A stretch of 64,000 nt of DNA from Convolutriloba macropyga (taxonomy: Eukaryota): the NCBI RefSeq assembly GCF_964194025.1, contig NC_134468.1:59272001-59336000 (forward strand), read 5' to 3'. Position 1 is the stretch's first letter. Each line of letters opens with the position of its first letter. The notes below the pieces were generated by a model. It ran no database searches, was not told the origin of the DNA, and saw only the letters and a program-made list of their open reading frames with translations. Both the position numbers and the translations under genes were made by a program. Positions 7,277 through 11,876 of the stretch are shown here, one piece after another.

Positions 7277-7741
7277 TATAAAATTATGTAAAATAGTACA
7301 GGTTATGAGCTCTGCGTGAGGTCACTTTTGGCCAAACACGACTTACTATACTGATGGGACTATACTATATACCTTTAAACTGCTTCAAGGCATGACAAGA
7401 CTAGGCTTCTTTGCAGCCTGTTGATGACCTGTTGGAACTGAGTAATAAGTTTGTGCTGAGTGGATAACATGTCCTTAGCTCCCGAAAACCAATTTATATC
7501 AAAAGTTTAGCACTGAAGTACTCAAAAGACTCTTAATTTCCTAAAACAGAAAAAAAGTTATACTTAAACATCAAAGAAATGGGAAACAAATACAAATTCA
7601 AGAAATGAGAGTCGACTTCATTACTGGGGTTTTTCCCATTATAACCGTCAACCTCAATCTCTTCTCTATAAATAGAATTCCATAAAAGTAAATTTCGAAG
7701 CAGTTGGTATGTTCCTTAGTTTCATGACTATATCTAATGTA

Positions 7742-8169
7742 TTAACGCGCAGAACTCGTGTTTGTGCTTGAATTCACTAATAAAGAATTTTTTGCGTCAA
7801 CAATCCAGTGGTAGAAATGTGGTATGTTTGTAAAGTAACTTCCGGCGTTACAAAACTTTCCAGTCCCGACAGATACTACAGCTGAGGATACACCGTACAA
7901 ACATTTCACTTTTCCGCCTTTCACTGCGTACAGAGGACCCCCGGAATCACCCATGCAGGTGCTTTTTTCTGTTACTACTGGGCAAATTCTATCAGCTCTG
8001 CACTCAGATGAGTTCTGGGGTTCTTCAAATGTGGTTTCCATTAGAATTTTAGAGCTTTTGATGGGGTATTGGGTAACAGTCAACCCAATCCCGCATGCTC
8101 TCAGGTCGGTTCCCGCTGGTTCCTTTTCCTTGCATAATGGTATTATTCGATTTCTGGGGAGCATGCCGT
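7742..8169 (-). CDS. Serine protease exon 3 (catalytic Ser)
   Basis: IIPLC...STCMGDSGGPL...YGVSS...FTNIPHFYHWI, stop at 7742. Confidence 0.88.
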
Positions 8170-9087
8170 CTGTTTTGGAATCTTTTTTGCTTCCAATAAC
8201 CTTAATTTTTTGCGCACTTGATCAAGCAAACAAATTATAGCCCCCACCCCTCATTTTGGTATTATTACAGAATTGAGGGTAATTATAGGATATCAACGCT
8301 AAGCTGGGGAGGGGTATATTGCGAAATGCCGTTTTTATTATAACCCCCTTCTACCCTCAAAAAAGAAAACCCCCCATTAGGTTATGTTAACTGTTATTTG
8401 GTGGTAGTGAATTTAATAAGAAATATTCTAAAGGCTACTTCAAAAAAGTACAAAAACAAGGCGATGGGTGGATAAATCTTGTTTGCTAAACCCTTGTAAA
8501 TAAAAGAGACCCAGTTTTAAAAATCTAAAATTAGAATTGTAAATCTAAAAAACAAAAAAGATGCCTGTTTTGATTACGGCCACGTCATTTAAAAGAGAAT
8601 CACGGACAAACCCCTCGTTAACTCGGACAGCTGTCGTTTCTAGAGTCACTCGCCAGCCCTCCCGAGAAGTGAAATCACCATACTGTACAGTGATTGAAGT
8701 ATTGGGATAGATACAATGGGCTGCAGTTAAAATTATGTTCTCGCCTATTATGCTACCACCGCAGTACTTCCATCCAAAGGTCAATCTCACGTAAAATAAC
8801 CGATTCACAGACTTGTACCCGTTTATTATTGCTCTCTCTTCTACATTTCTGCTCACATCTGGGGGCAGGTCTTTCCCATTATAGCCAAACCCCAACCCCT
8901 CGATAATGCACCCCCCTTAAGGTTTAATTATGGAAATTAAGTGGCTATACGTTATATGAGGGGGGGGGGGGGGTTCTATACGTTATGGGGGGAGCTACGC
9001 TATATGGGAATTACCTGATCTTTCAACATTTTGCACAACATTGCTGTGCATGAACGAGAGAAAGGTCAAAACAAAAATTTTACTCAT
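7742..9087 (-). CDS. Secreted S1A (chymotrypsin/elastase-like) serine protease, ~264 aa. Exons 9015-9087, 8565-8858 (or 8870), 7742-8169
   Basis: Signal-like MSKIFVLTFLSFM, mature N-terminus IING, and an intact triad LTAAHC / NDVAV / GDSGGP. Ser at the S1 position (KSTCMGDSGGP). The exons join in frame through two phase-1 introns; the splice model is inferred. Confidence 0.8.
8178..8564. mobile_element. TIR element with 8-bp TSD forming protease intron 2 (Introner-like)
   Basis: TSD CTGTTTTG at 8170-8177 and 8565-8572. Ends GAATCTTTTTTG / CAAAAAAGATGC are an 11/12 inverted match. Confidence 0.8.
8565..8858 (-). CDS. Serine protease exon 2 (His and Asp of the triad)
   Basis: IINGY...CGGSIIGENIILTAAHC...LNDVAVIKT. 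Confidence 0.85.
8866..9017. mobile_element. MITE occupying protease intron 1
   Basis: Ends CAGGTCTTTCCCATTATAGC / GCTATATGGGAATTACCTG. Same TIR family as 9925-10044. Confidence 0.75.
9015..9087 (-). CDS. Serine protease exon 1 (signal/propeptide)
   Basis: ATG at 9087, MSKIFVLTFLSFMHSNVVQNVERS, donor CAG|GTAATT. Confidence 0.65.
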
Positions 9088-9714
9088 AGCAGATGCTAGT
9101 GGATCTGTTGATTGTCAAGTTAGTGTTTTGTATGACAAATGCTATGGAAAGGAAGTAATTAATTCACGAGAACTTTTCCCGCTCTTTTTGACCAGCACTT
9201 GTTCTCACGAAATAAACATAGTTATTTTCTAGCGGTAGAACTAATTAAGATTAAAACACTCACGTGCACATTTTAAAATGCCGAAAGTCTGCAGTGCCCG
9301 AAGTCAAAATGCCAGAAGTTGCTACTTAGCCAGAAGTTGAATTTCGTTGACTTTCGTCATTTCAAAACGTGCGTGTTTCGTGTTTTAAGCATGGTTGAGT
9401 GACTCTGCAGAAGTCACTTCGAAATTCTAACTTAATATCTCGGACAGTTTCGCGGTTCTCGATAAACGTCAGAAGTTCTCAGTGACTTCAAGCAGAGTCA
9501 CTTAACTATTACTTAAAAGTGAGTCAAAAATCAGGGTGAAATGTCAAAAAGAATATTACCACACGGTTGTTATCGCTCCCGAGAAGATATCCAACTCCAA
9601 GGCGAAACCGAGGTGTTATGATAACTTCGAGGACGATAACAACCGTGTGGTATTTTTTTCAATCAACACCTGTTGCGATCATTCCAAAATTGAACACAAT
9701 TTTATTGATTTTTC

Positions 9715-9874
9715 GGATCTATTCTGTTTCGGCCCCTCAGTGTTTTTTATGACCCCCAGTTACAAATTGTATCTTGTTATATAGCACGTTACTATGTAAC
9801 AAAATAGCACGTGCACCTGGGGGTCATAAAAAATTTATGCTCACTAAGCGGGGGGGGGGAAACAGAATAGATCC
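9715..9874. mobile_element. Merlin-like MITE
   Basis: Perfect TIR GGATCTATTCTGTTTC / GAAACAGAATAGATCC. Perfect 8-bp TSD GATTTTTC (9707-9714, 9875-9882). Confidence 0.85.
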
Positions 9875-9924
9875 GATTTTTCAATTTTATTTTTTCTGGA
9901 TAATTACATTTTCAAAGGTCAGTG

Positions 9925-10044
9925 GGGTATTTCCCATTATAGCTCCCCCATGAAATTATAACACCCTATTATGGTATAGTTACCATGATTGGGGGGCTAT
10001 AGGTTACATGCCCATTAAGCTGGGGGCTATAATGGGAAAGACCC
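9925..10044. mobile_element. Merlin-like MITE (second TIR family)
   Basis: TIR GGGTATTTCCCATTATAGC / GCTATAATGGGAAAGACCC. TSD GGTCAGTG / GGTAAGTG. The paralogous empty site (single GGAAAGTG) is on the minus strand near 11930. Confidence 0.8.
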
Positions 10045-10094
10045 GGTAAGTGATACTTCGGATCTGTTCTTCGTTTTGTCCTCATGCGCCCCCC

Positions 10095-11876
10095 ACACAT
10101 ATATACACACAGACACCGACACACGCACATACATACAAACACACACACTTTCACACACACGCACACACACACTTAAACACACTTACACACACACAAACAC
10201 ACACACACATACACCAATACACACACACCCACGCACGCACGCAGAAACACACACTCACCACAAACAATGCATACACCGCACCCAACACACCTCTTACTCA
10301 CTCTACACAAACACCATACACCACATACACACACCACACACATAACACACACACACACATGCAAACCACACACACACACACCCACACACACACGCACACA
10401 CTCGCACACTCATACGCGCGCACATGCAAACAGACACACCCACTCAAAAGCTCGCAAGCACGCAAGCACACACACTGACACACGCANNNNNNNNNNNNNN
10501 NNNNNNNNNNNNNNNNNNNNNNNNNNNNNNNNNNNNNNNNNNNNNNNNNNNNNNNNNNNNNNNNNNNNNNNNNNNNNNNNNNNNNNNNNNNNNNNNNNNN
10601 NNNNNNNNNNNNNNNNNNNNNNNNNNNNNNNNNNNNNNNNNNNNNNNNNNNNNNNNNNNNNNNNNNNNNNNNNNNNNNNNNNNNNNNNNNNNNNNNNNNN
10701 NNNNNNNNNNNNNNNNNNNNNNNNNNNNNNNNNNNNNNNNNNNNNNNNNNNNNNNNNNNNNNNNNNNNNNNNNNNNNNNNNNNNNNNNNNNNNNNNNNNN
10801 NNNNNNNNNNNNNNNNCACACAAGACACGCACCACACTCACACCGCACATATCCCACACAAACCACAAACAATCACCGCACACACACCACCCACACCACA
10901 CACCACACACAACGCACATCACACACCACACACGTTTTTTAATCAACACCTGTTGCGATAGTTAGTCAACACCAGTTAAATAAACTGCCAGTGTAATAAA
11001 TTTTAGTGCCCGATCGACACTGGAAAAACACGTCAGCATTAGACTGCGAGTTTATCACACTCTTTTATCGCCACTGTTACTAAACAAACATTGGCGATAA
11101 AAGAGTGGTGATAAACTCGTACTCTAATGATGGAAACAGTTTGATAGACGTGTAGTCTAAAAAAACTTGTGNNNNNNNNNNNNNNNNNNNNNNNNNNNNN
11201 NNNNNNNNNNNNNNNNNNNNNNNNNNNNNNNNNNNNNNNNNNNNNNNNNNNNNNNNNNNNNNNNNNNNNNNNNNNNNNNNNNNNNNNNNNNNNNNNNNNN
11301 NNNNNNNNNNNNNNNNNNNNGTGTGTTTGCGTTTGTGTATGTTTGTGTGTGTGTATGTGTGCGTGGGTGGGTGTTTGCATGTGTGCTTTGATAAACTTGT
11401 AGTCTAAAAATACTTGTGTGGCGTGTGTGTTGTTTGTGTGGTATGTGTGTGTGCGGTGTGTGCGTGTCGTTTGTGTGTCTCTGTGTGGTGTGCTTGTGTT
11501 GTGTGTTTGTGGGTGTGTGTGCGCGCGTATGTGTGTGTGTGCGTGTGTGTGTTTGCGTGTGTTTGTGCGTGAGCGTGTGNNNNNNNNNNNNNNNNNNNNN
11601 NNNNNNNNNNNNNNNNNNNNNNNNNNNNNNNNNNNNNNNNNNNNNNNNNNNNNNNNNNNNNNNNNNNNNNNNNNNNNNNNNNNNNNNNNNNNNNNNNNNN
11701 NNNNNNNNNNNNNNNNNNNNNNNNNNNNNNNNNNNNNNNNNNNNNNNNNNNNNNNNNNNNNNNNNNNNNNNNNNNNNNNNNNNNNNNNNTACGTCCTTTT
11801 GCGTGTGTGTTTGTGTGGATGTGTGTCTGTGTGTGTGCAAGTGTGTGTGCGCGTGTGCATGTGTGTGTGTGTGTGA
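10095..11876. repeat. Degenerate (CA)n then (TG)n microsatellite tracts with three N runs, inside a fold-back structure spanning ~9550-12335
   Basis: CA-rich 10095-10933 and TG-rich 11320-11876. Inverted homology between 9551-10085 and 11893-12117, and between 10940-11160 and 12118-12333. Confidence 0.9.

Follow-up and report, generated by a model that had tools for sequence, protein, structure and literature searches.

In the genome of the acoel Convolutriloba macropyga, a gene for a trypsin-like S1A protease carries a first intron that consists almost entirely of a miniature inverted-repeat transposable element (MITE). Very probably, this element inserted into a coding exon and now serves as intron 1, with the GT of the splice donor provided by its own terminal inverted repeat (TIR). 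The gene has three exons on the minus strand and lies in a 64,000-nucleotide stretch of chromosome 1 (59,272,001-59,336,000), hereafter the window, from whose first base positions are counted. The source assembly comprises 1,175,981,408 bp; the genome, txConMacr16.3, was published with 1,175.98 Mb in 4,694 scaffolds (PMC13650328).

The right-end 19-mer of the intron copy has 6,531 matches in the genome at no more than one mismatch, against none for the reversed control, and across the whole genome these matches often form inverted pairs about 105-120 bp apart. The family consensus of about 128 bp, aligned from 19 full copies, reads GGGTCTTTCCCATTATAGCC(C)n...(G)nGGCTATAATGGGAAAGACCC, with the ends GGGTCTTTCCCATTATAGCC...GGCTATAATGGGAAAGACCC and clean 8-bp target-site duplications (TSDs). 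These duplications match at seven or more of eight positions in 31 of 42 sampled copies, and the preferred target is palindromic (S-A-A-W-W-T-T-S). When aligned globally to the consensus, the intron copy reaches z = 9.9 and its interior alone z = 5.0, and none of 2,000 shuffles equalled the score. The copy is decayed: identity over aligned blocks is 87.5%, with many indels including a 23-nt insertion, and typical family copies are 93-99% identical to the consensus. Its inverted arms were found at 8866-8879 and 9004-9017. The initial annotation had described intron 1 as MITE almost throughout, and 148 of the 156 nt do belong to the family copy; the element was placed correctly within one or two bases, while its length is 150 nt (9016..8867) and not 152 nt. 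The same annotation had assigned the sequence at 9925-10044 to this TIR family, and a canonical copy with a TSD is indeed present there (Table 1). Both of its ends are among the four occurrences of the 13-mer TTCCCATTATAGC in the window, where 0.04 were expected.

A search of the genome with the DNA of the whole element returned the intron copy itself as the only match, and neither its interior nor its left-end variant was found elsewhere in the genome. The differences are therefore regarded as private changes that followed the insertion. A distinct "splice-ready" subfamily was considered and rejected, as the searches with the interior and the left-end variant gave no relatives. At a likeness of at least 90%, read depth over 8804-8975 is about 3-4 times that of single-copy sequence, and it reaches 10^4-10^5 times over the young repeats at 9234-10150.

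The donor was likewise expected to come from the TIR, and alignment to the consensus agrees: the GT (9014-9013) corresponds to positions 3-4 of the family terminal repeat (GGGTCTTTCCC / GGGTCTTT) and the exon-ending AG to positions 1-2. Exon 1 ends in CAG|GTAATT, and its final two bases (9016-9015, AG) fall within the MITE as judged by the family termini. Within the first eight bases of the left repeat there are three changes from the consensus, C5A, T6A and the synonymous G1A (TCG to TCA). All of them move the sequence toward CAG|GTAAGT, whose match thereby increases from 5/9 to 8/9. RNA folding predicts that both repeats pair in a long hairpin (-44.8 kcal/mol), in which the donor lies no more than some ten bases from the acceptor and the two new A's of the donor stay unpaired at the hairpin base. 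On this model, the changes at the donor would both strengthen pairing with U1 and free the donor from the hairpin. A purine (A or G) occupies repeat position 5 in 127 family copies. The double change to GTAATT occurs in 3 of 100 family copies among the matches listed, one of which (L071) was read and is an ordinary insertion with a TSD; recurrent optimisation of the donor in the family was thus considered, with no sign of it. As an observation apart, the intron copy has A/T at the outer tip of each repeat (8867 and 9016), where the family has G/C (AGGT...ACCT). This symmetrical change could represent two independent transitions or descent from a source copy with shorter GG...CC ends.

At the other end of the intron, two in-frame acceptors had been proposed, and both were recovered as exact RefSeq junctions. 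The AG dinucleotides lie at 8860-8859 (CCCCCAG|) and at 8872-8871 (AAAG|), 12 nt apart. Translation across the junction 9015->8858 equals RefSeq isoform X2 (XP_075258100.1, 264 aa) residue for residue, and translation across 9015->8870 equals isoform X1 (XP_075258098.1, 268 aa) to the same degree; the AAAG| acceptor, located inside the right repeat, adds the four extra residues. A profile made from the paralogs together with the gene's own exons retrieved X2 and, as its cluster mate, X1. The spliced protein of 264 aa is encoded by a coding sequence (CDS) of 795 nt, contains the motifs TAAHC, NDVAV and GDSGGP and matches the Pfam Trypsin domain PF00089 (2.2e-25, residues 37-245). With this domain, the His/Asp/Ser triad and an N-terminal signal peptide that was called by eye, it has the features of an S1A (chymotrypsin-fold) protease.

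This CDS has remained intact next to a strongly decayed insert. About 12.5% private substitutions and many indels have built up in the element, and the 795-nt CDS shows neither a stop nor a frameshift and retains the complete triad. In a neutral simulation of substitutions alone at the divergence of the element, the open reading frame (ORF) stayed open in 1% of trials. An intact CDS beside a decayed element implies that the gene was under selection with the insert present, and hence that the insert must leave the mRNA.

The comparison with paralogs indicates that the intron was gained. With exon 2 as query, 47 paralogous exons were retrieved from the genome, of which the closest belong to L033 (64% identity; same strand, at a distance of 35 kb), L034 (58%) and L035 (44%). 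In all three, the start codon, signal peptide, RAIING and TAAHC lie in one open frame with no intron 1. In 16 of the 20 paralogs examined, the I(I/V)NG motif is preceded in the same frame by a methionine and a hydrophobic leader. Intron 1 is therefore a gain specific to this gene and younger than the split from L033 and L034, from which the gene differs by a synonymous divergence (dS) of about 0.75. The check that the initial annotation had recommended, an alignment of paralogs for intron presence, was thus carried out, and a shared MITE-free intron with the same boundaries was not seen among the paralogs examined. For orthologs, a protein search with exon 3 gave only a 63%-identical fragment, and the contigs of the European Nucleotide Archive (ENA) gave variants of paralogs only. 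One of these variants (L068, ENA ERZ25071359 contig) is nearly identical to L033 and lacks about 1.4 kb, running in mid-exon into downstream sequence (protein P0003). It adjoins a retrotransposon pol gene and may represent a haplotype with a deleted paralog.

Several points weigh against the reading of intron 1 as a spliced MITE insertion. The only runs retrieved for the locus in searches for RNA, with the whole gene and with exon 3 alone, were genomic DNA runs of one study, and the splicing of intron 1 rests on the computed RefSeq annotation and an intact, constrained ORF. The ratios of nonsynonymous to synonymous substitution (dN/dS) against L033 and L034 (0.39 and 0.40) cover all the time since duplication and not just that since insertion. 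The lost TSD, in a family where 31 of 42 sampled copies retain one, leaves classical transposition into the exact site inferred. The link to a transposase, treated below, is by coordinates only. Further, the main acceptor lies exactly one TSD length (8 nt) past the right repeat, and L035 has the very sequence of the spliced X2 junction AGATCAGA (AGA TCA GA) at the corresponding place; both facts fit an acceptor supplied by the TSD. One alternative, which we consider very unlikely, is that the insert is not an intron at all: it would disrupt the gene, leaving a young pseudogene or a gene with another start, and the RefSeq models would bridge it computationally. The annotation-based support for splicing, the three in-frame stops met on read-through and the non-canonical GC donor of intron 2 would suit such a scenario. 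It is opposed by the preserved ORF and triad and their 1% survival in the neutral simulation, by the dN/dS values, by the three consensus-ward changes at the donor and by the lack of a downstream in-frame ATG that would keep a signal peptide. Two isoforms 12 nt apart at the acceptor would moreover be unusual for an ab initio predictor. The NCBI pipeline normally emits alternative isoforms and GC-AG introns only with transcript support. In the four genomic runs, the locus is each time one contig, unbroken from 7929 to 9278, and neither spliced nor empty-site forms occur among the joints listed. Only the length of a poly-C/G run at 8959 in the intron copy varies, by 2-3 bases between the read sets of two sequenced specimens, which may be homopolymer slippage or sequencing error; no other polymorphism was seen across 7929-9278 in these read sets. 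Poly(A) RNA-seq of C. macropyga is public (PMC13650328). A further view, already raised in the initial annotation, holds that a phase-1 intron existed after the signal peptide, that the MITE landed inside it and that it later filled it. Phase-1 introns are common at this place in animal S1A genes, and the intron 1 copy has no TSD; yet no intron stands there in the three nearest paralogs or in the 16 of 20 family members, the 8 of 156 nt that are not MITE are too short for an earlier intron, and the donor GT itself aligns to the terminal repeat of the family. On this sequence comparison, the takeover of an ancestral intron is rejected as extremely improbable.

For the origin of the acceptor, there are two competing proposals. 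As had been noted initially, the intron copy has no visible TSD: the flanks GAAAGATC and GCCCCCAG match at 3 of 8 positions. In a target-site matrix of the family, the left flank GAAAGATC scores +2.1, where real TSDs average +2.9, and the score of -7.7 for the right flank GCCCCCAG is lower than that of any of the 31 real TSDs. GCCCCCAGAT resembles the coding sequence GCC TCA GAT of the paralogs, and exact excision of the element yields an ORF colinear with L033 up to the Asp of this motif. Most likely, then, the acceptor would derive from former coding sequence homologous to the paralogs' GCC TCA G. The competing proposal is the classic geometry of introners (transposons that create introns), with an 8-bp TSD ending in CAG (AAGATCAG), of which the left copy would provide the CAG| that closes exon 1, while the acceptor AG would come from the right one, now GCCCCCAG. 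Splicing would restore the ancestral mRNA exactly, and the intron would at first have begun with GG, becoming GT-AG as the G-run lost two bases. The pre-insertion sequence expected would be ...GAAAGATCAGATGTG... in that case, versus ...GAAAGATCGCCCCCAGAT... if the flanks were contiguous, which is incompatible with the classic geometry. Besides the 8-nt spacing of the acceptor, the CAG at the end of both flanks speaks for this proposal, as does the agreement of the spliced AGA TCA GA(T) with AGA TCA GA(A) of L035, against which the 32 aa that precede the domain in X2 align without a gap; intron 2 has the same geometry (TSD CAAAACAG, GG/GC start). However, the three matching TSD positions are those that splicing itself would keep, and the five adjacent changes required in the right copy far exceed the approximately 12.5% divergence of the element. 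Moreover, AAGATCAG scores only -0.9 in the matrix, against the values given above for the two flanks, and the right flank resembles coding sequence of paralogs. We therefore regard the classic geometry as unlikely, and an acceptor from former coding sequence as roughly twice as probable as one from a TSD.

With the acceptor taken as former coding sequence, the following history can be proposed. An abundant, probably Merlin-type MITE would have entered the propeptide-coding part of an uninterrupted first exon after the split from the nearest paralogs, at a site well suited as a target (GAAAGATC). As a donor, the canonical repeat end would have been weak (G|GTCTTT), possibly aided by a hairpin in which both repeats pair and the splice sites are brought together. 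The three later private changes (the synonymous G1A, C5A and T6A) would have produced the donor AG|GTAATT and opened the hairpin base. An acceptor would have been recruited from the C-rich former coding sequence, with the main site, CCCCCAG|, 8 nt past the right repeat, and the right TSD copy would have been lost through a small deletion inside the new intron. For these two steps, the acceptor origin and the lost TSD, the chances appear about even. X2 would then drop two old codons, and X1 would keep them and add two more. The gene would have been functional throughout since the insertion, the insert being removed as a 156-nt phase-1 intron.

By its sequence features, intron 2 is transposon-built as well, as had been suggested together with a derivation of the two introns from two TIR families. 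Its 8-bp TSD CAAAACAG is perfect and provides the acceptor, and the intron starts at the first base of the element with GC or GG. The element ends (window 8170-8572) read GGATCTTTTT...AAAAAGATCC in L033 and L034, which share this intron (GG start, same CAAAACAG repeat); it is absent in L035. On this distribution, intron 2 is older than intron 1 and predates the split of these paralogs. The families of the two introns are distinct, and their ends (GGATCTTTTT vs GGGTCTTTCC) look related: the first eight bases of the intron 2 element match GGGTCTTT of the intron 1 family at 7 of 8 positions, and both families have 8-bp TSDs. Judging from these ends, the two may have been mobilised by related transposases.

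Members of the Merlin superfamily possess an IS1016/IS1595-like DDE transposase and produce TSDs of 8-9 bp. The intron 1 family shares with them the 8-bp TSD and short TIRs with GG...CC ends, and the genome encodes at least 18 IS1595-type (Merlin-like) DDE domains above the Pfam cut-off. Two of these domains (C10:57,552,502-57,552,870 and C6:37,922,230-37,922,550) lie about 0.7 kb from variants of the family repeat end (GGTATTTCCCATTATAGCC), where a rough estimate gives about 0.004 chance coincidences. The spans C10:57,552,502-57,553,575 and C6:37,921,487-37,922,550 are thus, by coordinates alone, candidate autonomous Merlin-type partners. From the TSD length, the GG...CC ends and the proximity to DDE domains, the MITE family is probably of Merlin type.

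Transposons that create introns are known from other lineages. In Micromonas pusilla and Aureococcus, introners are MITE-like DNA transposons (PMC11282704; surveys PMC9860276, PMC12130899), in which one splice site comes from the element and the other from the TSD or from neighbouring host sequence (PMC11282704; PMC9860276). In a 2022 survey of 3,325 genomes, just two groups of animals had introners, and acoels were not mentioned (PMC9860276); nor are acoels mentioned in a further survey (PMC12130899), and our literature searches gave no report of transposon-derived introns in acoels. Like an introner, the protease element is a short non-autonomous TIR transposon in coding sequence that is removed, here by annotation, as a spliceosomal intron, with the 5' GT in the element's end and the other splice site in adjacent host sequence. 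Unlike introner families, which have many intron copies, the present family is represented by ordinary insertions. When the element and one TSD were removed from the 42 sampled full copies, the joint ORFs were not longer than those at random joints (median 18.5 vs 19 aa in the control; maximum 62 vs a control 99th percentile of 69). On this small sample (n=42), the family thus consists of ordinary non-coding insertions and is no specialised introner; the protease copy is an exception. Further differences from the elements of Micromonas and Aureococcus are the TSD of 8 bp rather than 3 bp, not preserved at the protease copy, and the host, a bilaterian animal. In addition, the protease donor lies two bases inside the repeat and, unlike that of introners, is strong only after later changes.

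A further parallel is the tunicate Fritillaria borealis, another animal genome in which elements with TIRs and TSDs have become lineage-specific introns (PMC11282704). Its MITE-derived introns are non-canonical, and intron 2 of the protease gene and its paralogs starts with GC or GG; intron 1, by contrast, is a canonical GT-AG intron, and nothing here shows an altered spliceosome. The two introns of the protease gene share the host gene, 8-bp-TSD elements with GG...CC ends and a gene- or clade-specific gain. Intron 1 differs in belonging to another family, in starting at element base 3 with GT, in its lost TSD, in its restriction to one gene and in its two annotated acceptors. The mechanism is a known, introner-like one; what is distinctive is a canonical donor rebuilt inside the repeat, two annotated acceptors of which one lies in the repeat, the loss of the TSD, and the presence in one gene of an older intron that is likewise transposon-born.

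Documented intron births in animals are rare. Here, the before-state is kept in paralogs, the transposon family is identifiable, and each base of the splice donor can be followed back to the terminal repeat, along with three subsequent changes that strengthen it. The two acceptors and the resulting isoforms, four residues apart, illustrate that an insertion can add coding variation. Alongside intron 2, this case suggests that transposon-driven intron gain in animals could be studied in acoels. More tentatively, and rather less likely than not, C. macropyga could be a bilaterian with repeated intron birth from Merlin-type MITEs, in which hairpin-ended insertions with weak or non-canonical donors are tolerated at first and then "mature" toward GT-A-A donors. 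In that case, the gene would record two independent events, from two related families and at two stages of the process: intron 2 as an old, TSD-based intron with a GC/GG start, and intron 1 as a younger one with a donor rebuilt in the repeat and two competing acceptors.

Table 1. Features of the protease gene and of the MITE copies in the window.
Feature	Position	Strand	Description
Exon 1	9087..9015	-	ATG and signal peptide (MSKIFVLTFLSFMHSNVVQNVERS and first base of next codon); ends TCAG; N-terminus identical in XP_075258100.1 and XP_075258098.1
Intron 1	9014..8859	-	156 nt, phase 1, GTAATT...CCCCCAG; junction 9015->8858 gives RefSeq isoform X2 exactly
Exon 2	8858..8565	-	Propeptide, start of domain (IING), catalytic His (TAAHC) and Asp (NDVAV)
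Intron 2	8564..8170	-	395 nt, GC..AG, flanked on each side by a copy of the 8-bp direct repeat CAAAACAG
Exon 3	8169..7742	-	Remaining protease domain, catalytic Ser (GDSGGP), stop codon
Decayed MITE copy	9016..8867	.	150 nt; 148 of the 156 nt of intron 1
Left terminal repeat, diverged	8997..9016	-	AGGTAATTCCCAT-ATAGCG vs consensus GGGTCTTTCCCATTATAGCC; holds donor GT 9014-9013
Right terminal repeat	8867..8886	-	19/19 identical to family core; last base T, not C; holds AAAG| acceptor (AG 8872-8871)
Eight non-MITE bases GCCCCCAG	8859..8866	-	Intron end with main acceptor AG 8860-8859; coding in isoform X1
Canonical MITE copy	9925..10044	.	120 nt, 92% identical to consensus, TSD CACT[T/G]ACC, about 0.9 kb upstream of the protease gene

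Further transposon sequences were observed in and around this gene family. In the paralog L034, a canonical copy of the intron 1 MITE family lies about 10 bp past the stop codon with a perfect 8-bp TSD (AGAGAATC); together with the intron 1 copy, this means that the family has struck these protease genes at least two times. A lone fragment at window 7627-7650 (GGGTTTTTCCCATTATAACC) is similar to the left end of the MITE family; it lies some 100 bp past the stop codon of the protease gene, and a right end was not seen with it. Window 10100-10400, directly past the canonical copy at 9925-10044, is occupied by a microsatellite, long and imperfect, of the type (GT)n / (GTGTGC)n, and a (GT)n run is also expanded within the MITE copy at L071. 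A third small and extremely abundant element, with the ends GGATCTATTCTGTTT...AAACAGAATAGATCC, lies at window 9715-9890, where contig depth is 10^4-10^5 times single copy, and another copy of it is nested in intron 2 of L034.

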